From Azolla caroliniana (taxonomy: Eukaryota > Plantae > Polypodiophyta), in assembly GCA_043228905.1 (NCBI GenBank), contig JBHGNT010000006.1, positions 1,116,001 to 1,180,000 of the forward strand: a stretch of 64,000 nucleotides of DNA. The letters run 5' to 3'. Shown piece by piece: positions 974 to 63,800 of this stretch (within the stretch, counting starts at the first letter, position 1; the number at the start of each line of letters is the position of its first letter). Under the pieces are notes generated by a model. That model had not been told where the DNA came from. It searched no databases and saw only the letters and a list, made by a program, of their open reading frames with translations. The translations under genes were made by a program, and so were the position numbers.

Positions 974-3900
974 TGTCATGAACACATGACTATTATGGCG
1001 TCACCCGGACTTGAACCTCGAACCTTGTAATCAATAATTGAAAACCTCAACCATTAAGATACTAGCTTATTGTCATATGAGAAGATAAAAGATAGACCAT
1101 TCTAGAACATTATAGAAATCTCTAAGTTATTCTATAGGAACCTATCAATAAGGGCATACATGTATTCTCAAATCAATTCGAATCAAACTGTCAGAACCAA
1201 GAAGAAAAGATAGAGTGATGGAAGAAGGATATAAGAATATAGTTCTACCAATGCACCATCTCCTTTTCATCAAATTTCAGCCATCACATTGCAACAATTG
1301 CGCCAAGTGGGAGGCAAGGAGGACCTTTTCTTATTTGTAGTATCAATGACACCTTCTAGTGCCACTCAAGGGAATTCAGACATGCAAATTCCCAAAAAAT
1401 ATCAAGATTATGTTGATGTTTTCGACAAAGTCAAAGCTAGTGTTCTTCCAAAGCATCGATCGTACGACTATCCTATTGATCTCCAACCAGGAAAAGCGCC
1501 ACCATGGGGTTCGATTTACAATTTATCACCCATTGAGCTTGAGGTGCTTCGAGAATACATCGAGGAAAATCTTGCACATGGGTTTATTTGACATTCAAAG
1601 TCTCCAACTGGTGCTCCTATCTTTTTTGTGAAGAAAAAGGACAACTCCCTTCGTTTGGTCGTGGACTATCGAGGCTTAAATAAAGTTACCATAAGGAATA
1701 GGTATGCTCTACCGCATTGGTGGGTTTTGTTGATCTAATGGGTGCATATAATCTTGTTCGAATTCGACCAGGAGATGAGTGGAAGGAGATGAGTGGAAAA
1801 CTGCATTTCGTACTCGGTATGGTCATTTCGAGTATATAGTCATGCCTTTCGGGCTCACAAATGCACCCGCAATATTTCAACATATGGCAAATGACATTTT
1901 CCCGGATTTCTTGAATATCTTTCTCATCATGATTGCAAACAAGTCGAATTTTTGGGATACACTATTTCATCCAAGGTTATTTTCATGGATCCAACAAATT
2001 TAATCCAAACGATATTGGAATGGAAACCCCCATGCTCAGTTCGGGACGTCCAGTGTTTCCTCGGATTTGCGAACTTCTATCGCAAATTCATACGTAAAGC
2101 ATTGTGTTGCCCCTCACCCAACTCACCAAATCAAGCTTTTTTTTGGAGTATCAAAGCGAACAAGGCTTTTATTCAGTTGAAAGAGGCATTCACATCAACA
2201 ACTATCCTAGCGCATATTGATCCCAAAAAGCCATTTACTATTGAGGCAGATGCATCAGACTTCGCATTGGGGAGTATCCTATCGCAACCAGGCGAGGACG
2301 GGTAGACTCATCCAGTCGCGTTTCACTCGAGAAAATTTACTGTTTCGGAGATAAACTATGAGGTGCATAACAAGTAGTTACTAGATGTGGTCGACTCATT
2401 CGAGCAATGGCGTCATTTTCTAGAAGGATTGCCTCATCAGATTATCATTATAGTGATCGCAAAAATCTCACATATTTTCAAACAACTCGCAAAAATCTCA
2501 CATATTTTTCGCCCTAGAAAACAACAAGGGAAAGCAGATGCGTTGTCTCGGCTTTCGTATCTAGATCTTCGACCTAGAGATGCGGCCTTTGACAATCAAA
2601 AGCAAATTCTCTCGGGCCATCAAAGCTACAGGCAACAACAATTTATGCCACACCACTTGATTCTACCCTTCTTGACACTATTTGGCAACAACTTCACTCT
2701 GATGATTTCGTTGAGGATGTCTTAGCCCACATTGGTTCAAGTCGTCCATCTTGCTCCACATTACAAGGGTCATATCAACATTATCAGGACTTGAAGTGGC
2801 AAGATGAATTACTCTTCTACAAGAATCTCCTTTACATCCCTGACGGATCACCCCGACTTCAAGTGTTAGAACATTGTCATGATGCCCCCATGGCCAGACA
2901 TTTTGGTATTGCCAAGACCATTGAGCTGGTGAAACATTTGTTTTGGTGGCCTCACTTGCAAAAATTTGTCGAAAATTACGTTCGCACATGTGACACCTGT
3001 TGTCGTGCCAAAATACCCAGGCATCATCCTTATGTCTTACAACAACCATTACCACCTCCCAGCAAGCCTTGGCAGTCTATTTCTATGGATTTCATTATGG
3101 ATCTGCCACCTTCCAAAGGCTTTGATAGTATTTTAATAGTAGTGGATCGGTTCACAAAGATGGCACATTTTTTACCGTGTGAAAAGACCATTAGTACTGA
3201 AGAAACTGCATATCTCATTATACGTGAGGTGTTTCGCCATCATGGTCTCCCAAATGATATTATTAGCAATCGAGGTCCTCAATTTATCTCACACTTTTGG
3301 AAGCACCTATGGGCAAGCCTCAAAATCTCCTACAAACTCTCTTCGGCTTATCATCCACAAACTGACGAACAAACAGAGCGCACAAATCCAACGCTCGAGC
3401 AGTGTCTTCGATGCTTCATCAGTTATCAACAAGATGATTGGAGTAATATTTTACATCTTGCCGAGTTTGCATACAATAACACGGTACACTCTTCTACCGA
3501 AGTTACACATCCTTTCTTTGCCTACACTGGCAACTACCCTCGATGGTGTATCCTGGATCTTCCTGAGGTGTCATGAAACCCTAGTGTGGCGCATCACCTC
3601 CACCGACTACAACAAATCCGGTTTGAGTTATCTTCACGTCTTCAAAAAGCGCAAGCACACCATAAGACTAATGTTGATCGGCATCATCTTAAGGTTGGTG
3701 ACCGAGTATGGTTGCTTCGTCGTCACATCAAGACTACCCGCCCATGTGCTAAGCTTGATTATCAACACTTAGGTCCTTTTGTCATCACAACGTGGATTAA
3801 TGATGCAACATTTTTTCTTAACCTTCTTGCACATATGCGGCGTCACCCAGTCTTTCATAGCTCTCTTTTGGAACCTTGCCGCACCTCTTTAATTCCTAAT

Positions 3901-4943
3901 CGTGTCGTACCACCACCACCTTCTGTCCAACTGGTTGATGACCCTGAATACGTAGCTCTCTTTTGGAACCTTGCCGCACCTCTTTAATTCCTAATCGTGT
4001 TGTACCACCACCACCTTCTGTCCAACTGGTTGATGACCCTGAATACGTAGCTCTCTTTTGGAACCTTGCCGTACCTCTTTAATTCCTAATCGTGTCGTAC
4101 CACCACCACCTTCTGTCCAACTGGTTGATGACCCTGAATACGTAGCTCTCTTTTGGAACCTTGCCGCACCTCTTTAATTCCTAATCGTGTCGTACCACCA
4201 CCACCTTCTGTCCAACTGGTTGATGACCCTGAATACGTAGCTCTCTTTTGGAACCTTGCCGCACCTCTTTAATTCCTAATCGTGTCGTACCACCACCACC
4301 TTCTGTCCAACTGGTTGATGACCCTGAATACGAGGTACCTACTATCTCGATTCTAAGATTGTGCGCAATAAGCTTTATTATCTAGTTGATTGGTTTGGCT
4401 ATGCTCTGAGTGATCGCACTTGGGAACCTGTCTATAACATTTGTAATGCTCAAGCTCTTATTGACGACTTCCATCGCCACTATCCAAACAAACCCAACCC
4501 TACAATGTTAACGAAGGAGGGATAGTGTCATGAACACATGACCATTATGGTGTCACCTGAACTTGAACCTCGAACCTTGTAATCCATAATTGAAAACCTC
4601 AACCATTAAGATAACTTATTGTCATATGAGAGGATTAAAACTACTTTTTGTATTACATTGATTATTGTAAAAACTCTAGATCATTCTAGAATGGACAGAA
4701 CATTCTAGAACATTATAGAAATCTTTAAGCTATTCTATAGGAACCTATAAATAAGGGCATACATGTATTCTCAAATCAATTCGAATCAACACTAGTCTTT
4801 AGCTCTCATTACATATCTTGTATCCATTCTCTTTCTTTCTTTATCTTAATACACCCATTCTTCTCTTAGCATTTCGTTCCTTTCTTCTCGTGTTCTCTTA
4901 TATCCTTCTTCCATCACTCTATCTTTTATTCTTGGTTCTGACA
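974..4943 (+). mobile_element. Degenerate Ty3/Gypsy chromovirus (Tcn1-like); gag/protease deleted, 5' LTR rearranged
   Basis: The 5' LTR starts TGTCATG at 974. The 3' LTR is 4526-4943 (TGTCA...TGACA), with PPT GAAGGAGGGATAG at 4513-4525. The TSD is CATGT (969-973)/CATGC (4944-4948). RT, RNaseH, integrase (2791-3576) and chromodomain remnants are frameshifted and homologous to the 24966-28538 pol. Confidence 0.92.
3858..4332 (+). repeat. Tandem repeat, 5 x 95 bp, within the integrase C-terminus/chromodomain linker
   Basis: The unit TAGCTCTCTTTTGGAACC...GACCCTGAATACG starts at 3858, 3953, 4048, 4143 and 4238; copies are nearly identical. Confidence 0.95.
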
Positions 4944-5281
4944 CATGCGTTGGGTTAGGTTGATTTTCGTTGGTTGTTTCGGCATAACTCCAATAGCCTT
5001 GGCGGACAAGGTATTGGTGCATCTTGTAAGTTCCCAAGATGCAAAGTTGTTTCTATCGAGCTTCTCGGTAGGAAGAGTGCTTCCCATCTAAGTGTTCATT
5101 GTCGAACTTCTTCTTCTTCTTCTCTTTGATACGAATTGTATAGATTGTTGCTACAACAATCAATCGGTTCTTTCTGAACGCAGGATTGGGCACAACACAC
5201 GCAAAGCCGATGGGCTTCGATCAAGCAACAACGCGCCCTGATACCATGTAGAGAATCAGATGGATTCTATGCAACAGAAGA

Positions 5282-5377
<96 letters not shown>

Positions 5378-6629
5378 TCACGATTACAAAAAATAGAAAA
5401 TTGTATTAGCATGGAGACAAGAATGACCAACATTTACAAAGAGAAGGAGAAGGGTGCTTATGTAGTCACCTTCTCTCTAAGTTCTCTCACTAGTATCGCC
5501 TCTTGGGAAAGAGGTCATGTCTTCACTACTTAAGGAATGTGTATCTATGAGCATATATTTAGTCACATACCGCTAGAAAGTTCCAGAACTAGAAGGTTCT
5601 AGAGGGTTCTAGAATATTCTAATGCATGTACTTTAGCTCACAATATAAATACTTATAACCTCATTGGTCCCTCTCAAAGGATTCAACACTAGCCATTGAT
5701 ACATCAATTTAGTATTAAATCATTTCATGCCATATTGTCTCCTTCTTCATATTTGTCTTCATGCGCTCGAGATAATCCTAGCTTCCTAAGTTCATAGTTT
5801 CATCACTCACAACTTCTAGAGTACCTAGCCTCGTCACTTCTAGTTCCACATTTGTGCCCTTATCGGTCGTAGCCTTGTCACCCGTGCTTCGTCCTAGAGT
5901 CCATGGTTGGTGTGTCCTTGACAGGTTGAATCCCTTCCATTGGAGGCATCACATAATCATTGTCAATATCCTTTCTTTTAAAGACATTGTCTCCACCGTC
6001 CTCGCTTTAGAGTTACCATCGTCATTGTCCTTGCTTCCAAAGTTACCATCATCAGCATCCTTAGTTTTATAGTTTGACATCATTGTCACAATCTTCGTTG
6101 CTTCTAGAGTCACCATAGTCAAAGTCATTCCTTCTAGAGACGCTTCCTCATCATCATTGTCTTCACTGCCTCGTCTTTGACATCATCATTTTTTAGTCCC
6201 TCTTGTTGTCTTCTTCAACACTACTTCGCCAAACCTTCATCTTCGTCAATACTACTTTTCTTGGTTGATCATTCTTTTCATCATTGTCATTGTCATAATC
6301 TAGAAGTATCATTTTGCATCACAATTTTGGTGAGGATTGGTTTCGATCACTCACTTTCCTAGTTCCAATGGGGGTTACAACCGCTCACTTTCCTAGTGGG
6401 AATTACATCATTTCTCTCTTGCACTCCATTTTCTTTGACGAGGGTCGATTTTGATCGCTCACGTTTTAGTTCCAATGGGGGCCACAACCACTCACTCTCT
6501 TGGTGGGGATCGCGCCGGTTTCTCGCTAGCGCTATCGTTTGTGCCTTGTTTTGGGTCAACCTCGATTATTTACCCTCTCATGATAGAAGAATTCAAGTCA
6601 GCTGTCTCACATGCACTCCTTCACCTATT

Positions 6630-7100
6630 GGTGTTCCAATTCCTGGTGAGGACGACATGGTCGCTCTCGCCCGATCGTGTTCTAGTTCCTAGTGAGGGCC
6701 GCACATGGTTGCTCACGCTCGTTGGTGTCCTGTTCCTAGTGAGGATCGCACATGGTCACTCATGCCCGTTGGTGTTCGTGTTCCTAGTGAGGACTGCACA
6801 TGTTTGCTCACGCTCATTTGTGTTAGTGTTCCCGGTGAGGACCGCACATGGTCGCTCACGCTTGTTGGTATTCTTGTTCCCGATGAGGACTTCTCATGGT
6901 CACTCATGCCAACGGTGTTTGAGTTCCCAATGAGGAACGCACATGGTCGCTCACACCTGTTGGTGTTCCCATCTCCGGTGAGGACAACACATGGTTGCTC
7001 ACGCCCGTTAGTGCTCCGATTCCTAGTGAGGACTACACATGGTCGCTCATGTTCACTCATGTTCCTATTTTTGGTGAGGACTACTTATGGTTGCTCACTC
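6630..7100 (+). repeat. Minisatellite, ~10 x 47-48 bp, inside the non-autonomous element just before the PPT
   Basis: The core xxTGAGG recurs at 6645, 6691, 6738, 6786, 6834, 6882, 6929, 6977, 7025 and 7073. Consensus is about TTCCTAGTGAGGACCGCACATGGTCGCTCACGCCCGTTGGTGTTCxxG. Confidence 0.9.
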
Positions 7101-7451
7101 ATTAATCTACTCCAGTTTTCTCTTTCAGCTCACCCCTTCACCATGCTCTCCAAAAGGTGGTTGTAAAGGGGAGGATAAAGTTACGATATAGTGACATAAA
7201 ATACATAGTTGGTGAGTATTGAACCTGCAACCTCACATCACATCAACAAGATGTCATGCTCAACCATCTTGATATGAACATGTATTTATATATGATATAC
7301 TTGATCTAGAAATACAATCTAGACACATACCTCTAGAAATATCTAGAACTAGAAGTTTCTAGAGGGTTCTAGACTATTCTCCAAAATATTCTAATGTATG
7401 TACTTTAGCTCACAATAGAAATACTTGTGACCTCCTTGGTCTCTTTCAAGC

Positions 7452-7956
7452 TGTTGAGACTCGTGTGTAGAAGATAGAGTGAGAGCGAGAGCGAGAGCGA
7501 GAGCGAAAGAGAGAGGGTGTGCGTGTGTGTGTGCGTGAGAGAGAGAGTGGGAGAGAGAGTGTGTGTGAGAGAGTGAGAGAGATAAGACTTGAAATAGAAA
7601 TGAGATTATATTATGATGAAACAAGATTACAATGAGTAGGCTAAGGGCTAAAGACTGGTGTTGAACCGAATGAGTTGAAACGAATGTATAGACAGTTATT
7701 TATAGGTCCTTATGGAGTAATCTAGAATGTTCTAGAATATTTTAGATTTTATGATAAGAAATATAATCATGAAATATTAAAGGATGTTCTAGAATAATCT
7801 AGAATGTTCTAGAATATTCTAATATCTTGTAATAATTAGAAACATAATTATTATAATCACACAACATATATGTTATTATAATGGTTAAGGGTTCAACACA
7901 TAGACCAAGAAGTTGTGGGTTCGGTTCTTGATAACCAAAATGTTGTCTTCATGACA
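7452..7956 (-). mobile_element. Solo LTR of the chromovirus-type family, inserted in the 3' LTR of the non-autonomous element
   Basis: Termini are TGTTG...TGACA. It shares GGCTAAG..AAGACTGG(T/C)GTTGAACC and the TATA/HSE layout with LTR 24514-24954. The host LTR resumes after 7956 (compare 5670-5700). The TSD is imperfect (CAAGC/AAAGG). Confidence 0.8.
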
Positions 7957-8974
7957 AAAGGGATTCAACACCAGTTATTGACACATCAATTTAGTATTAT
8001 CATTTCATGCCATATTGTCGCCTTCTTCATATTTGTCTTCATGCTCTCCAGTTAATCCTAGCTTCCTAAGTTCATAGTCTCATCACTCACATATTCTAGA
8101 GTTCCTAACCTCATCACTTCCAATTTCACGTTCGTAGCTTTATCGATCAAAGCCTCGTCATTCGTGCTTTGTCCTAGTCTATGGTTGGTGTGTCCGTGAC
8201 ACTTGGATAGACATAAACAATGAGTACCTCAATTTTGCAATCGAGGTACATCATATCTAACTAGTTCTTTCCATAGATAACATTGAACCAATAGGGATAA
8301 CGTTTGGTAGTTGATATGCATGGTCCTAGTTTTAGTAAACTACAACACCTCACTTTGTTTATCAATAGAGAAACTTGGTCATTTAGTTCTTTATCCTATT
8401 TTTACCAGAGAAACATAGGATGAGTGTTTCCTAGAAGCTTACAATCAATGAGTTACAAAGGCTTTGGGGAAATTTTGATATGGTGGATTTCTATAAACAA
8501 GGTAAGCAAATGCACATTGAAGTGCAAGCAATGCTAATGAGGATTGTGCATATTTTAGGAGCATAATTGTAACTGTAGTTGTGGGCTAATTCGTAAGGAA
8601 TCGAGGGTGAGGATTGAGTTATCTCAATCCCACAATGGGAGATAACTTTAGAGTGTTTTACAGTTGGTTGCTTTTTTTATAAAAAAAGGTGTGAAACATA
8701 CAAGGGCCCAAGCTTTGAGCTTATATTAAAAGCCTATCTACCTTCATGAGGGGGATCTCTTTTCTTTATTATTTTGACATAGTGGTAAAGCTCTAGCTTC
8801 AAACATGCGTGCCTCCTTCTTCAAACCCAAGGTGTGGTCCATATATGTACTTGGTGGTATGAGAGTGGGGACTTGGATCCGTCTCTCACCCTTGCTAAGA
8901 GGTGGTTGGATGATTGGCACCCTTTCTTCCTTATTTTCCTACTAAAATTTGCATAGCGTTAATATATTATGATA

Positions 8975-24021: not shown

Positions 24022-24965
24022 GAGGTACAATAGTTGAAACTTGAACCAAGACCTTGAAGTTTGTAGTGTACAGAAAAGTGAAAGAGATAGATACTTAATG
24101 GAACTATTTCACTTTAAATTCCATTTTGTTGATGTCTTTAACATTTGGTTTCCTCATGACATGAAGTGCTATCATGTTATTTTAGACAAGCACCATAATC
24201 TAGTAGAGAGCATTGTAATTCTTTGCAAAAATACTTACTTGTGTCCCCTAGATTATTATTTTGGCTCAGAAAGAGTTATTGAACTCTAGGTTTAATTGTT
24301 TGTTTTATTTAGGAGTCAATTAAGAGGTGGGAGATGTCGTTGACACTCAATCTCAAAGAATTTTTGAGTTTGTTGAAACATAATAACTATTAAGCATCCG
24401 CCTATTTATGGGTTAAGTTGGCAATACATAAAGAATATGACATTAATGTAAGGTCCTTTACCTGTACAAACTGAAGGGTAACCATGGGTTGATTTGTGTT
24501 TATGGGGGGTATATGTCAGGAATAGCACTAAAATAGAGATGGAATTAGTATTAAGAACAACAGTACTATTAGTACTAAGATGACGGGATTGCGTAAGATT
24601 CCCGAGAGAGGAAGTGAGAAGAGGAGAGAGAGAGAGATAGCGAGAATGAGAGAGAGAGAGAGAGATGATGACAGCAGCTATATATTATGTGAAAAGATAA
24701 GTACAAGCGGCTAAGAGGCTTAAGACTGGCGTTGAACCAATTTGGTTCAAAACAATGCCTTGTGCCTCCTTTTATAGTGTTTTTAGGAATAATCCTGAAG
24801 CTTCTAGAATGCTCCAGAAAGATCTGGAATATACATCAATTTTCTATGATAAAGTATAAATGAAAATAGTATCCTACAAAATACAATTCATAATCTAATG
24901 GTAAGAGCTCGACCCATGTAGCATAAAGTCATGGGTTCGAGTCTTGCCATGACACTATCTCCCCC

Positions 24966-27900
24966 TTAAAGACGACGAGTGGAACGAGTCGGCGCTAATT
25001 GCGGACCGGGTTTGTCCGGATACTTTCGGTGGAAATCAGCAAGAAGATCTTGTGCATTGGCAACATTCTTGACGGGTTCCCAAGTACGTTCGCTCGGACT
25101 ATAACCGAGCCAATCGACCAAGTAATAAAGTTTGTTGCGAACAAGTTTGGAATCGAGGATGGCAGCAACTTCATACTCCGGGCCGGCGTCCAACTCCAAC
25201 GGGGGCGGCGGTGGTGTCACACGATCGGGAATGGTGTTTGCTTTATAAGGTTCAAGAAGAGAACAATGGAAAACCGGATGAATCTGAAGCTGCGGAGGGA
25301 GATCCAGACGGAAGGTGACATCATTAATCTTCCCCGTAATACGGAAAGGACCGAGTCGTCGATAATCCAACTTGTCGCACGGTCGAGTAGTCTTGATGTG
25401 ACGACGTAAGAGCCATACTCGATCTCCGATGGCAAAAGAGGAGGGAATCCGATGACGATCCGCATAAGTCTTCTGTGTGTGTTGAGCATGACGAAGGTGA
25501 GTAGAGAGATCCATCTGGATCTTGCGTAGCCTCTCCAAATGGTCCTCGGCACGAGGGTTGGTAGGTAGCTCCGGAGTGTCGATCACCGACCAGCGAGGAT
25601 GGAAACCGGTATAAGCGAGAAATGGGGAGACCTGAGTCGAGGAGTGAATAACATTATTATACGCAAACTCCGCAAAGTGGAGAATCTCGGCCCAATCGTC
25701 CTGTTGATAACTCAGGAAACACCGGAGATATTGCTCCAACGTTTGGTTTGTTCGTTCCGCCTGTCCGTCAGTTTGAGGATGGTAGCCGGAGGAGAGGTTG
25801 CAGGAGACCTTGAGCATCCTGAAGAGATGCTGCCAAAATTTGGAGACAAATTGCGGGCCTCGGTCACTGATAATACTGTCTGGTAGGCCATGATGCCGAA
25901 ATACCTCACGCATAACAAGAGCGGCGGTTTCCTCGCTAGTGATGGCTTTAGTACATGGCACAAAATGTGCCATCTTCGTATATCGATCGACAACGGTTAG
26001 GATAGCATCGAACCCCTTCGAGACTGGCAGATCTGTAATAAAATCAAGACAAATAGACTGCCATGGCTTACTTGGAATTGGTAAAGGTTCCAACAAGCCA
26101 TATGGATGGTGTCGTGGCATCTTTGCTCGGCAGCAAGCATCACAGGTCCGAACGTAGTCGTCGACAAAACGGCGCATGTGGGGCCACCAAAAAGATCGCT
26201 GCACTAACTCCAATGTCTTGGTACTACCGAAATGTCCCGCCGTATGGGTGTCGTGACAATGTTGGACGATTTGAAGGCGACAGGAGCAATCGGGGACATA
26301 TACGCGCTTTTTAAAGAATAACAAACCATCATGATATTCGAATTGTCGGTAGTCAATACCTGGTTGTTGAGACTGAGAACAGGATGCCCGAGAAGTATCA
26401 ATGTGCGCCAGGATGTCTTGAGCAAAACTATCCGTCTTCAAGGTTGCACGTATGTCATCGGTAATCCGTGAATCCATCGGGGTGTGAAAAATCCGCGTCG
26501 TGTGCAATCGTGTTGGTCCCAAGATTACTTGCTTTTGATTATCAAATGTTGCGTCACCAGGACGAGGTGCAAGATATGAACGCCGTGATAGTGCATCTGC
26601 TTTTCCTTGCTGCTTCCCCGGTCGATATGTGATTTCGAAGTTGAAACGCGTGAGGAATTGCGCCCACCGAGCTTGCCGTCGATTTAGTACGCGAGCGTTC
26701 TGAAAATAAGCAAGATTTTTATGATCGCTAAAGACAATGACCTGATGTGGAGAGCCCTCTAAGAAATGCCGCCATTGTACAAAGGAATCCACGATGGCTA
26801 ATAACTCCTTGTCATGTATTTCGTAGTTGATTTCTGCGACATTGAATTTGCGCGAATGGAAAGCCACCGGATGCAACTCTTCTTTATCGCCTTGTTGAGA
26901 AAGGATGCTACCGAGGGCGAAATCTGATGCGTCGGCCTCCATGATGAATGGTTTGCTTGTATCCACATGAGCTAGAATCGGTGCTGATGTAAAGGCTTTC
27001 TTAAGATGCCGAAAAGCCATATCTGCTTCGATGGACCAAAGAAATGCTTGGCCCTTCTTCGTAAGTTGTGTGAGAGGTAAAATAATCTTCGAGTAATCCT
27101 GTATAAACTTACAGTAGAAGTTAGCAAAGCCTAGAAAACATTGTACATCTCGTACCGACCGTGGAATTTGCCACTCTAGTACAGTTTGGATTTTAGCTGG
27201 ATCCATGGCGATGCCCTTTGAGGAGATGACGTAGCCTAGAAATTCCACTTGCTTGCAGTCAAAGCTACATTTCTCTAGCTTGGCAAAAAGACCATTCTCG
27301 CGGAGTCGCTTTAGTACTAATAGTACATGAGAATCGTGCTCTTCCTGGGTCTTCGAATAAATCAACAGATCATCCAGATAAATGATCAAACAGATATCCA
27401 AGAGGTCTCTGAATATATCATTTGCCATGTGTTGGAAGACTGCGGGTGCATTGGTTAGGCCAAACGGCATAACAGTATACTCGAAATGCCCATACCGCGT
27501 GCGAAAAGCGGTCTTCCACTCATCTCCCGGTCGGATCCGCACGAGATTATACGCTCCTCGTAGGTCGATTTTAGTAAAAAACTTGGCACCATTAACTCGC
27601 TCTAAAAGACTTGATATAAGAGGAAGTGCATACCTATTCCGGATGGTGACTTTATTCAATCCGCGGTAATCAACGACAAGACGAAGTGAGCCATCTTTCT
27701 TCTTGACAAAGAAGATGGGTGCACCGGCCGGAGATTTCGAATGACGGATGAACCCGCTTGCCAAGTTCTCCTCTATGTAGGCTCGAAGGACTTCTAACTC
27801 GGTGGGTGACAAGTTGTAAATTGGTCCCCATGGTGGCTCGGTTCCTGGTTGTAAATCGATGGGACAGTCATAGGGACGGTGATGAGGAAGGGTACCGGCT

Positions 27901-28547
27901 TTTACCTTGTCAAATACATCGGCATAAGGATGATATTTTGCCGGAAGTTGTATTGAGGAGTCCTTCTTAATAGTGCTAGAAGGATGTACTGATATGGCAA
28001 ATAGGAACATTGCCTCCTTGGGTCCTTCTTCGCGTAGTTGATGGAGTGAAATGGTCGAAACTCGGTGAGTTGATTCTTGGGGTGGTCGATATCGGACTTC
28101 TCTTGTTCTCCAATCTATGGCTGGATTATGTAATTCAAGCCAAGGTAATCCTAGGACAATGGGATGCTCTGGACTACTAATTATATTAAATGATATTATA
28201 CACACAAAACTACCTAGGACAACTTGAATGGGTTCTGATTCTTCTACAATATTCCCGGAAGCAATGGGACGACCATCAATGACCACCACAGATGCGGGAC
28301 AAGGAAGTTTTCTTAAGGATATCTGAGAAGCTTGGGCAAAATTTCGATCCATGAAACAGGAATTAGCTCCGGAATCTAAAAGTGCTAGGACGGGTACTGG
28401 GGGAGTACTTTTAGTACTAACAATGACTTGGGCTAGGAACACATTGCTAACTTGCTTGAAAGGAATGGAACCACTAATGGGCTGTACAGATCTAGGGCTG
28501 CTGTCCAACCAAATGGCTCCTATTTTGGCTGGACTCAATCGTTTAAC
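24966..28547 (-). CDS. pol: Pol: protease-RT-RNaseH-integrase-chromodomain, in the -1 frame relative to gag
   Basis: Motifs: LLDSGA (protease), YLDD (RT), EADASD (RNaseH), HHCC and DDE integrase, GPF motif, and a group-I chromodomain EYEVAAILDS..YYLVDWLGYSPSERTWEP. Confidence 0.95.
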   Translation of the reverse strand, partial: VKRLSPAKIGAIWLDSSPRSVQPISGSIPFKQVSNVFLAQVIVSTKSTPPVPVLALLDSGANSCFMDRNFAQASQISLRKLPCPASVVVIDGRPIASGNIVEESEPIQVVLGSFVCIISFNIISSPEHPIVLGLPWLELHNPAIDWRTREVRYRPPQESTHRVSTISLHQLREEGPKEAMFLFAISVHPSSTIKKDSSIQLPAKYHPYADVFDKVKAGTLPHHRPYDCPIDLQPGTEPPWGPIYNLSPTELEVLRAYIEENLASGFIRHSKSPAGAPIFFVKKKDGSLRLVVDYRGLNKVTIRNRYALPLISSLLERVNGAKFFTKIDLRGAYNLVRIRPGDEWKTAFRTRYGHFEYTVMPFGLTNAPAVFQHMANDIFRDLLDICLIIYLDDLLIYSKTQEEHDSHVLLVLKRLRENGLFAKLEKCSFDCKQVEFLGYVISSKGIAMDPAKIQTVLEWQIPRSVRDVQCFLGFANFYCKFIQDYSKIILPLTQLTKKGQAFLWSIEADMAFRHLKKAFTSAPILAHVDTSKPFIMEADASDFALGSILSQQGDKEELHPVAFHSRKFNVAEINYEIHDKELLAIVDSFVQWRHFLEGSPHQVIVFSDHKNLAYFQNARVLNRRQARWAQFLTRFNFEITYRPGKQQGKADALSRRSYLAPRPGDATFDNQKQVILGPTRLHTTRIFHTPMDSRITDDIRATLKTDSFAQDILAHIDTSRASCSQSQQPGIDYRQFEYHDGLLFFKKRVYVPDCSCRLQIVQHCHDTHTAGHFGSTKTLELVQRSFWWPHMRRFVDDYVRTCDACCRAKMPRHHPYGLLEPLPIPSKPWQSICLDFITDLPVSKGFDAILTVVDRYTKMAHFVPCTKAITSEETAALVMREVFRHHGLPDSIISDRGPQFVSKFWQHLFRMLKVSCNLSSGYHPQTDGQAERTNQTLEQYLRCFLSYQQDDWAEILHFAEFAYNNVIHSSTQVSPFLAYTGFHPRWSVIDTPELPTNPRAEDHLERLRKIQMDLSTHLRHAQHTQKTYADRHRIPSSFAIGDRVWLLRRHIKTTRPCDKLDYRRLGPFRITGKINDVTFRLDLPPQLQIHPVFHCSLLEPYKANTIPDRVTPPPPPLELDAGPEYEVAAILDSKLVRNKLYYLVDWLGYSPSERTWEPVKNVANAQDLLADFHRKYPDKPGPQLAPTRSTRRL

Positions 28548-29692
28548 TCTTCATCTAATTGACTAAGGATTTCAAATTTATTTGAGATACTTGGGCTATT
28601 AGTACTATGAATACTATCTGACACTCTATTAGTACTATTAATACTATCAGACACTCCGAAGGGAAGAATTGACTCGGGTTTAGTACAGGCGACGATTTGA
28701 TTTACCTGTCTTCTTGGCCTATGGGGACAATTGATGGCGATATGTCCTGGTCCACCGCAATAAAGACATAATCGATTGGCACGTCGTCGTTGCTTTTCTT
28801 CTTCCGATAATGGGCCGCGTCGACGCATGGTATCGATCTCCATCGGTGTCGAAGTATTTGCTTGAGGTATGTCTCGTGCAAACGGTTTAGCCGCGACTGC
28901 GGCGTAAGTGGGCTCTGGCCTAGAGCGTGGTATCTGTAATTGACGTTCTGAACGCCGTTCAAAAAGGCGGTTGTCACATCGAACTGCTCGACTGATTGCC
29001 TCCGTAAGAGACTTTGGTTCTTCGGGGAAAGTTAGAAGTAGATCTTTGACATCGTTTCGCAAGCCATAGCGAAACTGCTCCATTAGTGCTTGATCATCCC
29101 AGGGTATATCTGAAGCAAGTAGGCGGAAATCCGCCGCGTAGGCAGAGGCTGGACGATCGCCTTGACGCAATCGCCGGATCTTGTTGATCGCCGTCCTGAT
29201 GCTGTCGGTGTCTCCAAAGCAGGCTTTAAACTCACCAATAAAATCTTCAAAGTTATTAAGTAAGGGTGATTGTTTTTCTAGAAGTGGAGCAAACCATGCC
29301 AAGGCTGAGCCGCTAAGTAGCGTGCCTATTAGGCCGACTCGAGATGCATCAGTGGGATATCGGGAAGGATGCATCTGGATGACTAAGCGTACCTGATTAA
29401 GGAATCCCCGGAATTGCGAACGCGTTCCATCAAATTTCACAGGAAGTCCAATCTTGGGCTCTTTATGAAATCCTTGGGGACTGGATCCTTGTTGTTGCAA
29501 CGCTGCTTCGAGTTGTTGTACCCGTAACGCTAACTCCCCATGTTGTTGTTGCGTTTGTTGTTTTTCTAGAGCGATTTGTTGCAGATCCCCTATCAGCCGT
29601 TGGTTTTCTTGTTCCAGGGCAACAAATTTTTCTTTTAGGCACTGTAGCTCGGAGAAAACGGATTGGTATTCTTGGGCGCTAACAGTAGCCAT
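28535..29692 (-). CDS. gag: Gag (coiled coil, retrotransposon capsid domain, CCHC zinc knuckle CLYCGGPGHIAINC)
   Basis: 385-aa ORF with EPKIGLPVKFDG, LRQGDRPASAYAADF, TPMEID and a CX2CX4HX4C knuckle; PEG10/sushi-type Gag architecture. Confidence 0.93.
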   Translation of the reverse strand: MATVSAQEYQSVFSELQCLKEKFVALEQENQRLIGDLQQIALEKQQTQQQHGELALRVQQLEAALQQQGSSPQGFHKEPKIGLPVKFDGTRSQFRGFLNQVRLVIQMHPSRYPTDASRVGLIGTLLSGSALAWFAPLLEKQSPLLNNFEDFIGEFKACFGDTDSIRTAINKIRRLRQGDRPASAYAADFRLLASDIPWDDQALMEQFRYGLRNDVKDLLLTFPEEPKSLTEAISRAVRCDNRLFERRSERQLQIPRSRPEPTYAAVAAKPFARDIPQANTSTPMEIDTMRRRGPLSEEEKQRRRANRLCLYCGGPGHIAINCPHRPRRQVNQIVACTKPESILPFGVSDSINSTNRVSDSIHSTNSPSISNKFEILSQLDEELND

Positions 29693-30015
29693 AGTATAGG
29701 GAAAAGGGTAGGAGGATGAGGGAGAGTGACAAGTAGGCTAGAGGAACAAATTGGTTCAAACTGTCAGGAATAGCACTAAAACAGAGATGGAATTAGTATT
29801 AAGAACAACAGTACTATTAGTACTAAGATGACGGGATTGCGTAAGATTCCCGAGAGAGGAAGTGAGAAGAGGAGAGAGAGAGAGATAGCGAGAATGAGAG
29901 AGAGAGAGAGATGATGACAGCAGCTATATATTATGTGAAAAGATAAGTACAAGCGGCTAAGAGGCTTAAGACTGGCGTTGAACCAATTTGGTTCAAAACA
30001 ATGCCTTGTGCCTCC

Positions 30016-30080
30016 TTTTATAGTGTTTTTAGGAATAATCCTGAAGCTTCTAGAATGCTCCAGAAAGATCTGGAATATAC
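30016..30080 (-). promoter_or_regulatory. LTR promoter: TATA box plus heat-shock-element array
   Basis: TATAAAA on - at 30016-30022. GAA at an exact 10-bp period (30033, 30043, 30053, 30063, 30073), interleaved with ATC/TTC/CTC/ATC. Confidence 0.75.
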
Positions 30081-30136
30081 ATCAATTTTCTATGATAAAG
30101 TATAAATGAAAATAGTATCCTACAAAATACAATTCA

Positions 30137-30200
30137 TAATCTAATGGTAAGAGCTCGACCCATGTAGCATAAAGTCATGGGTTCGAGTCTTGCCATGACA
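30137..30200 (+). promoter_or_regulatory. tRNA-like Pol III internal promoter (A/B boxes) at the U3 tip of the 5' LTR, antisense to the element; identical copy at 24891-24954
   Basis: A-box-like TAATCTAATGG (30137-30147) and B-box GGTTCGAGTCT (30180-30190), 43 nt start-to-start as in tRNA genes. Confidence 0.65.
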
Positions 30201-37379: not shown

Positions 37380-37448
<69 letters not shown>

Positions 37449-38954: not shown

Positions 38955-38989
<35 letters not shown>

Positions 38990-48738: not shown

Positions 48739-48895
48739 AGTTCCTTCTTGTTTCAATCCCATGATTGGGACGTTACGCCATTTTTATTTTATTTTTGATG
48801 ATTGGGTATTTACATCCGGTTGTATCCTTTGTCTCATGGTTCAATTTAGAAAAAGTTGAAATATTTTTGTTTCTAAATACTTTTTATTATCTAAA

Positions 48896-48979
48896 GTCAA
48901 GATAATTGAGAGGTCTAAAGCACTAGACGCAAGTTTTGGTTCTCGTATGAGAGCGTGGGTTCAAATCCCATTTTTGGTA
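48896..48979 (+). pseudogene. tRNA-Leu(CAA) pseudogene, copy 5
   Basis: GTCAAGATAATTGAGAGGTCTAAAGCACTAGACGCAAGTTTTGG...GCGTGGGTTCAAATCCCA. Confidence 0.75.
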
Positions 48980-49105
48980 CTTTAAGCCATTTTTATTTTT
49001 ATTTTTATTTTTTATGATTGGGTATACATCCTGTTGTATCATTTGTCTCATGGGTCAATTTAGAAAGATGTTAATATTTTTCTTCCTTTGTTTGTTGATA
49101 ATAAG

Positions 49106-53847: not shown

Positions 53848-53939
53848 TGTTGTAGACAGAGGTCGTCAATGCAGAAGATCAAATAGCATTCGATTAGGGT
53901 TGAGTACCTGCGTATGACAGTTTCAAGGTCGTGCACAGA

Positions 53940-53970
<31 letters not shown>

Positions 53971-56900: not shown

Positions 56901-58076
56901 GGTGCTGATGTCGGGTGTGATGCGGCTGCTTGTTTGCCATACTGGCAATGTTCGCAGAATTGATGGCCCGAGAAGGAGAGTTTAGGGATGTATCCGGCTC
57001 TAGATAGGTGCGTAATGCCGGCCTTGCTGAGGTGTCCTAATCTTCTGTGCCATAGTGATGACACAGGAATATCCACCAAAAACAGGTTACCCTCCCTGAG
57101 CGTAACATGTAACGGATACAGGGAGTGTATCTTGGGTCCTCTAGCAAGCAGGAGGTTCTTCATTTTCGATGGGATCGATTTGCCCCTTGACTATGAGATA
57201 GTCCTGCATTTGCTCCTTCCAGAAGTTGAAGTTCGAACCATCGAACTTTCGTAGACTCATTTCTGACGAGCCGGATGTTGATGCCATCAAATTTGGTTTC
57301 GGTTAACGAAGCTCGGTTCGGAGTTGACTACGAACCTTGTTGGAGTGCAGCCGGTTGGCTCACCCGATATCGTTCTAGTCGGATTTGGACCCGAGTCGGT
57401 TCGGCTTCGGATATATGTATTGTTGAACTTGCTCGAATTGACTCCGGTAACTTGAGGGACAGAACCGACTGGTCTTCCCGAATGTTTCCGAGTCGTAGTG
57501 AGCCCGGTTCGCTTCCGAATATATATGCCGAATACCGATTATTGAAACCGATTATCTGAACCGATTCTGCTTCAGTTGACTGCAGCGACGAGAGAGACGG
57601 ATCCAACTGATCCTCCCGAATGTCGATCAGCCGGATGAAGCACGAATTTGGGTTGTTTTCTTGAGACCGATTTGCACCGAGTGGTTACAATGAGCGGCGA
57701 GCAGCGTTTGATGACCTCTTCGAATGCCGTTTAACCGAGTGGAGCACGATCGTGTCAATGTTGCACAAGGGGATTTCACCTCGAGCGGTTACGATCACAA
57801 GGAACAGAGTACAACCTGCTGGCTTACTCCAAGCAAAGATGATCTAACGCGATGAGATGCAAGCCTCGTTTTTCTTCTTCTTCTCTCTTCTTCGAATGAC
57901 GCAAGAAACCGAATGCTGTGCAGGCTGAGACGACGGCCGACAGCGGGATGAAGGACCGAATACTGTGCAGGCTCTGATACTAGATGTTGTAGACAGAGGT
58001 CGTCAATGTGGAAGATCAAATAGCATTCGATTAGGGTTGAGTACCTGCGTATGACAGTTTCAAGGTCGTGCACAGA

Positions 58077-58109
<33 letters not shown>

Positions 58110-58295
58110 GCACAAAAGACTTTCTATTCAATAGAAACAATAATACAACCCAACCTTACAAAAAAGGTTACAAGGTCACTATATATAGTGACCGACTTAG
58201 GGCAACTACCATTTATGCTAATTACACAAATGGCCCAAACTTGATCTATACAAAGGGATAGTGTGAATACGTCCATTATACACTTGTATTCGACA
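53848..58295 (-). mobile_element. Young Ty1/Copia element D with an internal gag/protease deletion
   Basis: The LTRs 53848-54156 and 57985-58295 differ by 2 substitutions and 1 GA unit. Perfect TSD GGCCT, PBS TAGTATCAGAGC (57971-57982) and PPT at 54157-54168. Confidence 0.95.
54350..57163 (-). CDS. pol: Copia integrase-RT-RNaseH ORF (937 aa) of element D
   Basis: GAG-pre-integrase LWHRRLGH, HSDVCGP/RTDNGGEF, QLDVKTAFLHGDL, IYVDD, and RNaseH YSDSQ..SKHIDVRYHF. Confidence 0.93.
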   Translation of the reverse strand: MKNLLLARGPKIHSLYPLHVTLREGNLFLVDIPVSSLWHRRLGHLSKAGITHLSRAGYIPKLSFSGHQFCEHCQYGKQAAASHPTSAPRETRPLDLVHSDVCGPMPHQSLGSASYFVSFIDDSTQKVWAYPIRTKDRVFSIFSDWLAMVENQTDRKLKCFRTDNGGEFKSEEFVKFCRQRGIRREFTAPHSPEQNGIAERMNQTIQERIVSMLQHSRLSDGFWAEALLTAVHIINMSPSRPLGLQIPQELWIGSKPNYDKLRIFGCEAYALIPKDDRRKLAPRSKKCIFLGYGSDGEMGYRLWDPERRKIVRSSDVVFNESAMNPSVEKPIEVRRVTFSDVPTLQEGPALNTRSASRVAEPYTTDSAQQNNSLSDHPTPIPDATSPIIPRRSERLSQPPERYSPGIFFTDAGEPTSYEEASTSVDSATWHLAMESEMHSIRANKTWDLVELPKNRRALPCKWVYRLKETSDSTTPKYKARLVAKGFRQEYGVDFDEIFSPVVKMTTLRFLLGVVAADNLELIQLDVKTAFLHGDLDEEIYMEQPKGFMATGQEHLVCRLRKSLYGLKQAPRQWYKKFDDFIQSIGFSKSDEDHCLFTNTAQDGSPIFLIIYVDDMLISGRHAGELADLIRQLRLKFAMKDLGPARHILGMKISRHRDKRHLFLSQTDYIGRVLERFNMQSAKSASTPLPMNLRLSQRDCPTSGPEGEDMKSVPYAPAVGSLMYLMVATRPDISHAVGVVSRFMHNPGRSHWNAVKHVFRYLAGTKDHGILFGPNSTSGVVGYTDSDFAGCIDSRKSTTGYCFKFGNGAISWKSKLQECTATSTTEAEYVAASDAAKEALWLGRLAHTFWQVDHDSTPVVYSDSQGAVALSKNPVHHNASKHIDVRYHFVRDCVISGKIGLEKISTTDNVADGMTKCLSADRFRSLRHQMGVTTNQSG

Positions 58296-60640: not shown

Positions 60641-60733
60641 AGTTAATGTAATGGTACGGTTGCGGTTTGTCAACGTGGAGGTGTAGAGTTCGAATCACAC
60701 CCTGCGCAGTAGTGAGTATTTCCTTTTTTTTTT
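60641..60733 (+). promoter_or_regulatory. tRNA-like Pol III cassette in U3 of the element E LTR, antisense, followed by an oligo-T terminator
   Basis: A-box-like TAATGTAATGG (60644-60654), TTGTCA at the anticodon position (Asp-like), B-box AGTTCGAATCA (60687) and a T10 run at 60724-60733. Confidence 0.6.
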
Positions 60734-60888
60734 ACATTTATGTCTCTTTATCTTGCCGGTATGCCGTTTTCTTCCTTGCCGGTATGCCGTTTTCCTCCTT
60801 GCCGGTATGCCGTTTTCTTCCGGTTCTCACCGAGCACTCCATTCTCTATCCGGAGGGACAAAAATATAATTTCCACATAGTGTGCAAC

Positions 60889-63800
60889 CTACACTACGAC
60901 ACTCGCCCCCTCCAAACCCGCACATCCTCTGGTATGTGCCGAAGTTCTTGATTCTTCGTATCCGTCTTCATCCGAAGCTTCCTCCAATTCTCCCCTTATG
61001 TCGACTATGAGTTGTAATCCACTTTCTTCGCTTCCCGCATCATTGTGGTCTTCGTCCGATTGCTCCTCATTGTCGGCCTCGACTTGGATCACATAAGGTT
61101 TGTCGTCGGTCCGCTTCTTGAAAATCTTCACCCGCTTCCCGGCTATAGGCACTCGTAGTATTGTTCCATCCAACTCGGACAGTCGGTACGTCCCGTTGTC
61201 GAAGACCTTCCGAACCTCGTACGGCCCGAACCACCTTTTCGCGAATTTCCGCATCGTTGTATGTTGATGGTCCAAGCTACTATCATAGACGATCACCCAA
61301 TCTCCTTCTTCAATCCTCCTCGGTCGTAGTCGGTGCTTTGTGTCGAACCGGCTTTTGTTCCGGAACCGTGCTTCTTGTTGTCGGCGTGACGCTTCCGCTA
61401 CATCTTTCGGTCTTCCCTCCAGTTGTCGTATCCGGACCGCTAGTAGTTCTTCCCGGCTCATCTCTTCCTTCCACGGTAGTATTGTCCATGTCGCGATTGC
61501 GGTTTCCGTTGGCATTACCGGTGCTTGTCCGGTCATGAGTTCTGCCGGCATGTAACCGGTCACGGAGCTATGCGTCGTCCGATCCGCCCATAGTGCATAC
61601 GGAAGCATTTGTGGCCAATCCTTCACCCTTCCGTCGCATGCCTTCGCAAGTGCTTTCACGATCGGACTATGTCCTCGTTCGATCTTCCCGTTGGCCTCCG
61701 GATTGTAGGCCGTTGTCAACGTTAACCGAACTCCATGTTTGGCGAAGAATCCCCTAGCTTTGTCCGAGTCGAGTTCTCCCCGGTCCGCAATCACTTGTCC
61801 TACGCAGCCGTACCTATAAAACACTTCTTCCAAAAGAAATTGGCACACCGCGGCACACGTTTTCCTCCGAAGCGCTCGACCTTCAACTTGGTTTGTGAGA
61901 TCTTCTCGAGCTAACACCAAGTATTTCTTTTGTCCAATCCCGGTCGGCATAGCTACAATGTCGACCATCCACTTGAAGTTGATTGTCGGTGAGAATGTCG
62001 GATGCAGCTCATCTCGGTGTCGGACCCCGGAGTAGACTTGACATTTCTCGCAGCTTTCTGTGAACTCCGCGACATCTTTATACATGTTCTTCCACCAATA
62101 TCTTTGCTTGATTTTCACAAAAGTTGCCCATGTTCCTCGATGTCCAGCCCAATCGGATTCGTGGAACTCGGACATTATCCGATTTCGTTGCTCTTTCGTC
62201 CCGACTACTCGAAGTGGTATCCCATCCGGTCTTTTCGGCGTCCTCCATATTAAACCGTTTTCCAAGAAGAACTTTTGGACTTGCCTCTTCTTCCTTCGGA
62301 TCTCGGCTCTCCTTTCTTTATCATTGGTTGAATCCTCGACCTCTTGTAGCATCTTCCCGATCATCAAGGTTTCCCCCTCGTATTCTTCTTCCCGGAATTC
62401 TCGGATCACGTTCACTCGGCATATGTGTTCTGACGTGAAGTAGTCTTCGGAAACTTCTTCATTATCTGATTCGGTTATGTCGTCTTCAAACTGCGCCCTC
62501 GATAACATGTCCGCTACCGCGTTGTCCTTCCCCGAGATGTGTCGAACCTCCGGATTAAGTGACTTGACATATGCAATCCACCTTAGCATAGCCACATCCG
62601 GTATCGTACAACACCGCATCATCCCGAGTATCGGAAGACAATCCGTCTCGACCACCACTTCAGCTCCGATCAAATAATCCCGATCCGATTTTATCGCCGA
62701 CACGACTCCCCACAGTTCTCTTTTGACTTGTGCATATCCGCGTTGTCTTTCGTTGAGGACCTTTGCTCCAAATCGGATCGGATACCGCGAACCATCCGAG
62801 TCGGCTTGATTGATGACCCACCCGATACCGGTTGGACTTGTATCAACCGTTACTATGATTGGCCGCTCGTAGCTTGGCTTCTTAAGTGATTCCGCCCTCC
62901 ATAGTGTCTTCTTGAGCTTCCTCATGGCTTTAGTGTGTTCCGGTTTCCACTCGAATTTCTTACCTTTCCGCAACAAGTGATAGAGCGGGTCCGCTATATG
63001 TGCATAGTGCGGAATCCATATGTGATAGAATGCACACGCACCCAGAAACCTTCGGACTTCCGATGTTGACTCACATACTTCCTTCATAGCTTGAATCGCA
63101 TCGATCTTTGTTGGTGACGGTCTTCGGCCGTAGGGTCCACATAGATGTCCGACCACCAATATTTCTTCTTGCCCGAATGCCGATTTCTCCCCGGAAAGTG
63201 TTAGGTGCACATCTTCTAGCTTTCGCAACACTTTCTCGCAATCATGAATATGGTCGACCACGAACTTTCGGCATCCCCGATCATCCATAGTCTCATCTTT
63301 TTCTTCCACCGCGCATCCTTTCATCGGAATGTCATCTAGAAACGGCATCGTTATCTCCGGGATGCAATCTCGAAGCACCTTGTTCATCGCGTTCATCATA
63401 TGTGCAACCGAGTTTGTCGCTCCTTGTGGTAGTGTGCACATTCGAACTAGTCCTATCGGTGTCCGCATGGTAGTGATGTCTCGGCTCTCCACGGCTAGTT
63501 GGAATTGGTCATACCCCGAGTATAGGTCCCCGATGGAGTATATCGCACGTCCGGCAAAAGCTTCCGCGAATTTGTCCACTATCGGACCGACTCCCGAGTT
63601 CCGGATCGTGACCTTGTTCACCGGTTGCAAGTCTTGGATGAATCGGAGTGACCCATTCTTCTTCGGAACCGTAAACCATTGATTTGAGTACGGAGCACTT
63701 GATGGCTCTAGAATCCCCATCGCCACCTTCTCCTTGAGCAAGTCGATGACTTTCGGAATATGCGCCCGTGGCACCGGAATCGGCTTCAGGTTCCACGGTA

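Follow-up and report, generated by a model that had tools for sequence, protein, structure and literature searches.

An antisense tRNA-promoter-like module at the outer U3 edge of LTR retrotransposons from two Gypsy lineages

LTR retrotransposons of two Gypsy lineages carry, antisense to the element and on the outer U3 edge, a module that keeps two blocks of a tRNA gene promoter and their spacing, whereas the sequence between the blocks has diverged and no conserved RNA fold is present. The explanation we favour, with a probability of roughly 45%, is that the module is a selected, TFIIIC/Pol III-promoter-like bipartite DNA element that remains from a tRNA gene or a SINE head.

Location of the modules and their carriers

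The window is the whole stretch of 64,000 nucleotides that was analysed. A first-pass annotation had described in it A-box/B-box pairs that are antisense to their elements, lie in U3 and point out of the LTR. All seven pairs were recovered with unchanged coordinates, strands and spacings, and the described arrangement holds for each of them: the modules read outward within the first ~25-95 nt of U3, right behind the polypurine tract (PPT). The two boxes start 43-44 nt apart in the window copies and 49 nt apart in module 2.

Element 1 is a plus-strand chromovirus (974-4945) that is internally deleted. Its modules lie on the minus strand, at 999..1066 in the 5' LTR (module 1, A block TATCTTAATGG, B block GGTTCAAGTCC) and at 4551..4618 in the 3' LTR (module 1b; LTR 4526-4945). 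The PPT before module 1b (4510-4525, AACGAAGGAGGGATAG) abuts TGTCATG at 4526. Module 2 (7207..7279, minus strand) is located in the 3' LTR (7192-8201) of the only non-autonomous element among the window carriers. It is marginal and diverged, with five extra nucleotides between the blocks and a G18-to-G53 spacing of 41 nt, and it is seen only once because the copy in the 5' LTR of this element is truncated. Nested inside the LTR of element 2 is the solo LTR of element 3 (7452-7956, element orientation minus), which holds module 3 on the plus strand (7872..7934).

Element 4 (24514..30200, minus strand) is an intact Tcn1/Tf1-Sushi-like chromovirus of 5.7 kb with gag and PR-RT-RH-IN-chromodomain; its pol contains the Pfam domains Chromo, SH3_Tf2-1, rve, RT and RNase H, its LTRs are 98% identical and its TSD is TATAC. 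Both of its LTRs contain the module, upstream of the TATA box and each time on the plus strand: at 24889..24952 in the 3' LTR (module 4; LTR 24954 down to 24514), behind the PPT TTTAAGGGGGAGATAG, and at 30135..30198 in the 5' LTR (module 4b; LTR 30200 down to 29762). Hence the module does occur in an autonomous gag-pol element, as had been proposed. The PBS of element 4 (29747..29761, minus strand, GTTTGAACCAATTTG) is complementary to the R start (CAAATTGGTTCAAC, e. g. 24744-24731), therefore no tRNA primer is used. PBS and R start covary among the window element and the external loci L001, L004, L085 and L088. The carriers fit the Tcn1 / Tf1-Sushi chromoviruses, as their integrase has a chromodomain and their PBS is self-priming, being complementary to the R start.

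Element 5, called Gypsy E, has its pol on the minus strand (63903-60889) without a chromodomain; its 5' LTR is outside the window. Module 5 (60642..60705, plus strand) lies in its 3' LTR region. In the carrier LTRs, the remainder of U3 is dense with Pol II elements: arrays of the heat-shock element TTCTAGAA and a TATA box. Targeting of integration to the modules, which was considered as well, found no support in the few insertions of this window.

Specificity of the module matches

The loose A/B-box consensus is noisy and does not discriminate by itself. At the stringency of the first-pass annotation it gives 43 pairs in the window, and at a spacing of 43-49 nt it gives 25 pairs compared to 11.0±3.5 in 200 dinucleotide shuffles. 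Our profile R1 is based on sequence only and was trained only on related elements from other public contigs. It recovers six window copies at 16-34 bits: modules 1, 3 and 4 reach 28-34 bits (module 1, 28.5; module 1b, 33.3; module 3, 30.5; modules 4 and 4b, 34 each) and module 5 reaches 16.1 bits (E 9e-4). Every other R1 match in the window stays at or below 9 bits, and no copy was found outside the LTRs of the window. Pure chance is rejected by the independently trained profile, not by the loose consensus. For module 2 the box pair itself was confirmed; its R1 score is just 6.6 bits over 7219-7249 (E 0.9) and its pairwise similarity has p=0.06.

Distribution in related elements

Families 1, 3 and 4 form one self-priming Tcn1-like chromovirus clade, family 2 probably belongs to it, and Gypsy E is a separate lineage. 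What had been annotated as five different families thus represents two lineages and not five independent cases, with family 2 being marginal. Since families 1, 3 and 4 fall into one clade and share the LTR start TGTCATG, their module is inherited. The same antisense module was found behind PPT|TGTCATG in 12 further chromovirus loci on other public contigs (57-93% identity in the integrase region). In another 81 loci (293 kb), R1 matched only three training-family repeat contigs and L089, a 75%-identical relative of Gypsy E with a homologous antisense module (13.2 bits). About 65 more distant Tcn1-like loci from JGI metagenomes (integrase identity <=56%) are without the module, and Gypsy E relatives at 65-68% identity have none in the stretch covered. 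Relatives of Gypsy E are also present in Riccia liverworts (~65%). The window further contains a GH17 glucanase, for which the best named match (56% identity) is from a fern. The carrier family is highly repeated in contigs of four sequencing runs that are probably DNA.

Conservation of the blocks and the spacer

The blocks are better conserved than the spacer (1.2-1.4 vs. 0.4 bits per column), which bears out the earlier impression that the boxes are kept at their distance although the intervening sequence has diverged. For 17 modules, the information content per column is 1.17 bits in the A block, 1.41 in AGGTY and 1.34 in the B block, compared to 0.40 in the spacer and 0.48 downstream, a contrast that may be inflated since the MAFFT alignment anchors on the conserved blocks. 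Between families the blocks are 60-63% identical and the spacer 30%, i. e. the random level, and within family groups the values are 81-84% and 66%; as the external loci may share one species, this is conservation between families and not demonstrably between species.

The distance from G18 to G53 is 35-36 nt in 16 of the 17 modules, as in a tRNA, whereas the tail from the module to the LTR end varies tenfold, from 4 to 47 nt. Indels therefore do accumulate beside the blocks of fixed spacing. The best-kept columns are universal tRNA and internal-promoter positions (A14, G18, G19, G53, T54, T55, C56, A58 and C61), and over the remainder of these LTRs no alignment between families is possible. 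Preserved blocks at a preserved distance, with diverged sequence in between, are what would be expected if a two-part DNA site, for example an A box plus a B box, were under selection.

Absence of a tRNA fold

RF00005, for which the gathering score is 29 bits, was searched against the full window, against segments of 116-121 nt that surround modules 1 and 4 and against 12 external loci, and gave zero matches at E<=10. ARAGORN called no tRNA at thresholds of 85% or above; at 75-80% only L007 and L003 were called in register, which is noise level. Pairing in the D and T stems (63.3% of cells) is at the level of shuffles (62.4±2.5%), the stem covariation score is 0.222 vs. 0.239 in shuffles, and RNAalifold predicted 0 pairs on both strands. 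A strong hairpin is found in the module 4/L001 family only (z -6.9 and -3.9) and is lineage-specific. By these results a genuine tRNA or a foldable tRNA-like RNA is rejected, in line with the earlier remark that the modules form no clean cloverleaf. The lack of a conserved RNA fold on either strand fits a site at the DNA level.

Pol III promoter features

In the window copies the B box (GGTTCGANNCC) is matched at 7-8 of its 9 specified positions. All 17 modules have GTTC, and almost all have A58 and C61. The A blocks match only 6-8 of the 9 positions of the canonical TRGCNNAGTGG, with 6-7 given for the window copies: T8, A14, G18 and G19 are kept, and in place of G10-C11 there is usually TC or AT (G10 usually being T or A). 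The canonical AGTGG is present in some external families (L007, L008, L085). The spacing from A to B is that of tRNA genes, as in a type-2 Pol III promoter. A run of four or more T follows 21-88 nt downstream in 10 of 20 copies; the remaining 10 have such a run only beyond 230 nt or have none within ~400 nt. This inconsistency of the terminator argues against a defined small-RNA product. Moreover, AGGTY is best conserved yet lies outside the classical promoter, and selection may therefore act on something besides A/B-box recognition. The conservation of just the two promoter-like blocks and their spacing suggests that these elements may recruit Pol III factors.

A possible role at the LTR edge

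A possible history of the module is that the decayed remains of a tRNA gene, or of the head of a tRNA-derived SINE, became fixed in antisense orientation at the outer (5') U3 edge in an ancestor of one self-priming Tcn1-like chromovirus clade. Gypsy E, an unrelated lineage in this genome, has the module too. The part that was kept would be a bipartite DNA motif rather than a foldable RNA. One half would be the D-arm/A-box block (TAYCYTAATGGTTAAG), the other half the variable-loop plus T-arm/B-box block (AAGGTY..GGGTTCRARTC), with 35-36 nt from G18 to G53 between the halves. We infer that this motif would serve as a type-2 Pol III promoter-like site and bring TFIIIC, and perhaps TFIIIB and Pol III as well, to the edge of the LTR. 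The predicted site lies upstream of the heat-shock-element cluster and the TATA box of the Pol II promoter, and a complex bound there could act as a chromatin boundary or opener. Its beneficiaries would be elements that are put into heterochromatin by their chromodomain integrase. An outward antisense Pol III transcript, if there is any, would be a by-product and not the selected product. The full proposal is more tentative, and we regard it as less likely than not: that autonomous LTR elements of a non-seed plant (the Tcn1-like clade and, independently or via LTR exchange, an unrelated Gypsy) carry a TFIIIC/Pol III recruitment site on the outer edge of each LTR, as a portable boundary or opener which keeps a heat-inducible Pol II promoter usable in heterochromatin.

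It is rather unlikely, though to be taken seriously, that the tRNA or SINE relic was retained for a cis function outside Pol III, the blocks being Pol II enhancer or transcription factor sites that can be read from either strand, a signal close to the PPT/U3 junction or a signal in the 3' UTR of the genomic RNA. The position of the top-conserved AGGTY (1.41 bits) outside the A and B boxes, the deviation of the A blocks from the consensus, the inconsistent terminator and a U3 crowded with heat-shock-element arrays and a TATA box would all agree with this. However, such a function would not be expected to keep both the tRNA-promoter positions and their spacing of 35-36 nt, no other motif could be recognised, and the element-sense strand is without RNA structure. 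A role in replication or RNA pairing, in which the U3 segment would pair with a tRNA or tRNA fragment, be a second primer site or be targeted by a tRNA-derived small RNA, is improbable. The element-sense strand in family 1 and L002/L005 does read TGGCGTCACCCGGACTTGAACC or TGGCTTCACCTGGGCTTGAACCC, resembling an extended PBS, but the acceptor-like TGG... stretch is missing from most families, and self-priming chromoviruses have no tRNA primer to contact. Furthermore, only universal tRNA positions are kept, blocks of 8-11 nt are too short for specific pairing, and a target of host small RNAs would be selected against in the element instead of being kept. An actual extended PBS (read-through of a tRNA primer) or primer-tRNA site was rejected, since both LTRs contain the module, since it occupies the beginning of U3 instead of following U5, and since the elements self-prime. 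Piekna-Przybylska et al. in 2010 reportedly found that a tRNA-Lys3-complementary U3-R segment aids minus-strand transfer of HIV-1. This segment, too, is a tRNA-complementary stretch inside a retroelement U3; however, it works via the tRNA primer, whereas the elements described here self-prime and their modules keep generic tRNA positions only.

Least probable, and disfavoured, is a neutral origin, i. e. an old tRNA or SINE insertion in decay, whose box conservation stems from motif-anchored alignment and picking by eye. It would account for the ~11 loose-consensus pairs per shuffled window, for the failure of RF00005 and ARAGORN to recognise the modules and for module 2, which is not significant by itself. 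Against it, the independently trained R1 finds six copies at 16-34 bits over a noise of <=9, the spacing is fixed next to a tail that varies tenfold, and families with spacers at the random 30% and otherwise unalignable LTRs still share 60-63% identity in the blocks. The selected Pol III-promoter-like DNA element remains the reading that we prefer.

Comparison with known systems

tDNA, SINE and extra-TFIIIC (ETC/COC) sites are chromatin boundaries in yeasts and mammals. By analogy, the B-box DNA of the modules could recruit TFIIIC without a functional RNA, and it sits between the flanking chromatin and a Pol II promoter; unlike at those sites, the predicted binding site would be carried by the mobile element itself. 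We know of no demonstration of tDNA or TFIIIC boundary function in plants. If TFIIIC binds, the modules would offer a tractable system for studying it there, and their carriers would be the first LTR retrotransposons with a built-in site for Pol III factors as a chromatin device. To our knowledge, LTR promoter modules derived from small-RNA genes have been found in miniature non-autonomous elements only, with transcription of the element as their supposed role. In the present case such a module occurs in the opposite orientation in autonomous, Pol II-driven elements, which apparently belong to two unrelated Gypsy lineages within a single genome. Cassandra and Helenus are proposed to transcribe themselves in this way; if the full proposal above is correct, the LTR elements described here would put Pol III promoter elements to a different use.

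Cassandra and Helenus, the cases in the literature, are non-autonomous TRIMs, in agreement with the first-pass annotation, and their small-RNA segment is in sense orientation (PMC10886601). Kojima 2024 (PMC10886601) unites the tRNA-like Helenus and the 5S-like Cassandra/Ajax under the name 'TRIMp3' and states that 'not a few LTRs' in Repbase hold similarity to parts of tRNAs. As in Helenus and Cassandra, the segment described here goes back to a gene for a small RNA and lies within the LTR, conservation centres on the A and B boxes, and no functional tRNA is encoded (PMC10886601). However, TRIMp3 elements are non-autonomous and 311-1263 bp long, and the role proposed for their sense module is to have the element itself transcribed by Pol III (PMC10886601). 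The carriers here include a 5.7-kb gag-pol chromovirus, and the modules are antisense at the outer edge of U3, leading out of the LTR, with a Pol II TATA box downstream in U3. They thus show neither the short non-coding element (<=1.3 kb) nor the sense small-RNA-like promoter that characterise Helenus and TRIMp3.

The chromodomain integrase and self-priming PBS of elements 1 and 4 and of the external loci are shared with the Tcn1 / Tf1-Sushi chromoviruses of non-seed plants (Neumann et al. 2019, PMC6317226; Novikova et al. 2010, PMC2864245). Self-priming of the Tcn1 clade is described in the former (PMC6317226), and the searched passages of the two papers make no mention of a tRNA-like U3 module. 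Like the heads of tRNA-derived SINEs, the modules are decayed tRNA-like sequences in which only the promoter blocks and their spacing are retained; in contrast to SINEs, they have no LINE-like tail, are not free-standing retroposons and have a fixed position and orientation in LTRs. Even if the module has another function, its bipartite conservation marks a cis-element that current LTR annotation ignores, and tRNA or SINE finders may mis-call it.

Carrier elements and position of the module

The seven A-box/B-box pairs reported in the first-pass annotation lie exactly at the positions it gave, with start-to-start spacings of 43-49 nt. When the elements were rebuilt, the anatomy described there also proved correct: each module is antisense, located in U3 and outward-reading. 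In all cases the strand that reads as the tRNA is antisense to its element, and the module occupies approximately nt 25-95 of U3, with the TATA box downstream, and reads to the outer LTR end.

Element 1 (974-4945, +) is a chromovirus that sits within a copia fragment. An internal deletion joins its 5' LTR directly to pol, and its 3' LTR (4526-4945) is preceded by the PPT AACGAAGGAGGGATAG. Element 4 (30200-24514, -) is an intact chromovirus with the TSD TATAC, gag, PR-RT-RH-IN-chromodomain and LTRs that are 98% identical. Element 3 (7452-7956) is a solo LTR inside the 3' LTR (7192-8201) of the non-autonomous element 2, whose module is seen only once because its 5' LTR copy is truncated. Element 5 (Gypsy E) has its pol on the - strand and carries no chromodomain. 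Neither the copia element at 53848-58295 (311-bp LTRs, 98.7% identical) nor the other copia fragments of the window matched the module profile; within the window the module is restricted to Gypsy-type LTRs.

Chromovirus 1 has a 95-nt tandem array (3763-4427; ~6 copies, 98-100% identical) close to the 3' end of its internal region, and a 48/95-nt array (6620-7145) lies within element 2. In Gypsy E, three ~20-nt tandem copies (GAAAACGGCATACCGGCAAG-like; 60770-60840, -) separate the pol stop from an A10GGAAA purine tract. Relatives of Gypsy E have GGAGGGGG../TGTCGT in place of this tract, and the PPT/LTR junction of the E copy itself is not sharply placed.

The module compared with chance

Scanning the window for canonical boxes at the stringency of the first-pass annotation (A box at least 6 of 9, B box at least 7 of 9) gave 43 pairs at 40-52 nt. 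Of these, 25 were spaced 43-49 nt, versus 11.0±3.5 in 200 dinucleotide shuffles; thus one loose-consensus pair is no proof of anything. To test the module without bias, public contigs were searched for relatives of the chromovirus integrase. All 12 external loci, with 57-93% identity to element 4 in the integrase region, have the same antisense module directly after the PPT/TGTCATG junction.

A sequence-only covariance model (R1) was trained on these external loci alone, and the window was searched with filters off. With E-values that are to be taken as rough, modules 4 and 4b scored 34 bits (E 2e-9), module 1b 33.3 bits (3e-9), module 3 30.5 bits (2.3e-8), module 1 28.5 bits (1e-7) and module 5 of Gypsy E 16.1 bits (9e-4), and the top remaining match in the window reached 9 bits (0.15). 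Module 2 scored 6.6 bits (0.9); five extra bases separate its blocks, and its pairwise similarity gave p=0.06. From its sequence it is plausibly a diverged copy, and a marginal one.

Conservation of blocks and spacing

In an alignment of 17 modules, information per column was 1.17 bits in the A block, 1.41 bits in a variable-loop-like AGGTY block and 1.34 bits in the B block, versus 0.40 bits in the spacer and 0.48 bits 3' of the B block, a contrast between blocks and spacer that MAFFT anchoring may exaggerate. Identity between families was 60-63% in the blocks versus 30% in the spacer, and within family groups 81-84% versus 66%. By both measures, therefore, the boxes outlast the spacer, as had been claimed; a spacer conserved at least as well as the boxes, the outcome named beforehand as speaking against the claim, was not found. 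The most conserved columns are A14, G18, G19, G53, T54, T55, C56, A58 and C61. The distance from G18 to G53 is 35-36 nt, the tRNA value, in 16 of the 17 modules, and the adjoining stretch, up to the end of the LTR, is anywhere from 4 to 47 nt long. On sequence comparison, this conservation is one between families and not necessarily between species.

No module matched RF00005 at E<=10, whether in the whole window, in 116-121-nt pieces or in the 12 external loci. ARAGORN called two modules only at thresholds of 75-80%, which is noise level, RNAalifold predicted zero pairs on both strands, and the cloverleaf D and T stems were 63% paired versus 62% in shuffles. Half of the copies have a T4 terminator within 21-88 nt; the rest have one only >230 nt away or lack one over ~400 nt. 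Without a fold or an RF00005 match, and with such erratic terminators, it is unlikely that selection maintains the module for the sake of a structured RNA or a defined small transcript. What is constrained is primary sequence and spacing.

The module of the element 4/L001 family (24889-24952 and 30135-30198; external locus L001, 4989-5053) contains a strong 11-bp hairpin, CTCGA(A)CCCATG...CATGGGTCGAG, with MFE z-scores of -6.9 and -3.9. This hairpin is absent from other families.

Clade membership and self-priming

Together with the external loci, elements 1, 3 and 4 form one Tcn1/Tf1-Sushi-like, self-priming clade; common to its members are the LTR start TGTCATG, a chromodomain integrase and, in U3, arrays of TTCTAGAA heat-shock elements. 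The PBS GTTTGAACCAATTTG (29747-29761, -), which follows the 5' LTR, is complementary to the R start CAAATTGGTTCAAC (24731-24744 and the equivalent 5' LTR site) just 3' of the TATA box, and these chromoviruses have no tRNA PBS. The pair covaries in loci L001, L004, L085 and L088 (CCAATTT/AAATTGG, CCGATTT/AAATCGG, CCGGAAT/ATTCCGG). For the Tcn1 clade of plants, self-priming of the Tf1 type had been predicted before (PMC6317226). The module was absent from ~65 Tcn1-like loci at greater distance.

Gypsy E represents a separate lineage that is not chromoviral. In locus L089, which is 75% identical to E, the LTR contains a homologous module, likewise antisense (13.2 bits); relatives at 65-68%, one of them from Riccia, have no module in the sequence covered. 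Of the five families originally proposed, what stands is thus one clade with an inherited module and one independent lineage, E, while element 2 is only a marginal case.

The U3 arrays of TTCTAGAAnnTTCTAGAA, alternating GAA/TTC units resembling heat-shock elements, lie between the module and the TATA box (window 1095-1125, 4680-4720, 7335-7375, 7720-7815 and 24800-24830; external L002 4390-4480, L086 4900-5020 and L087 150-260). Judging from these arrays, the chromoviruses that carry them may be heat-inducible. Being palindromic, the arrays also produce spurious miRNA-family matches in Rfam.

Possible role of the module

Our preferred reading, held tentatively at a probability of about 0.45, is that the module is a tRNA- or SINE-derived relic kept as a type-2 Pol III promoter-like DNA site, for which we infer both binding and function. 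TFIIIC, perhaps joined by TFIIIB and Pol III, would be recruited to the edge of the LTR, upstream of the heat-shock-element cluster and the TATA box. There the module could form a boundary, or open the chromatin, for chromoviruses that target heterochromatin.

The conserved blocks could instead have some other function in cis. The position of the AGGTY block outside the classical boxes and the imperfect A boxes favor this explanation, though we consider it rather unlikely overall. Pairing with a tRNA or tRNA fragment is improbable, since the carriers are self-priming and generic tRNA positions alone are conserved. That the module is a neutral relic or an artefact seems very improbable.

LTRs with small-RNA-derived promoters are already known from Cassandra, Helenus and Ajax (PMC10886601). 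In contrast to the module, however, their promoters are sense-oriented and the carriers are non-autonomous TRIMs. Kojima remarks in passing on tRNA-part similarity in many Repbase LTRs (PMC10886601). Our literature search found no account of an antisense module at the U3 edge conserved in autonomous elements, and this form is apparently new.

Other features of the window

Host genes between the elements encode an alkaline/neutral invertase fragment (20737-21360), a GH17 beta-1,3-glucanase with an X8 domain (37278-39125) and an ACT-repeat (ACR-like) protein (42144-43013). The top named match of the GH17 protein, from a fern, is merely 56% identical, so the host lineage is thinly sampled in the protein collection. 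At 47950-49100 (+), repeated units of 170-280 nt contain a cluster of five tRNA-Leu(CAA)-like copies. With its default thresholds ARAGORN calls two of them, at 90% it calls five, and their RF00005 scores of 23.9-27.6 bits are slightly below the 29-bit gathering score. The cluster probably represents a degenerate array of tandem tDNAs or a repeat derived from a tRNA.
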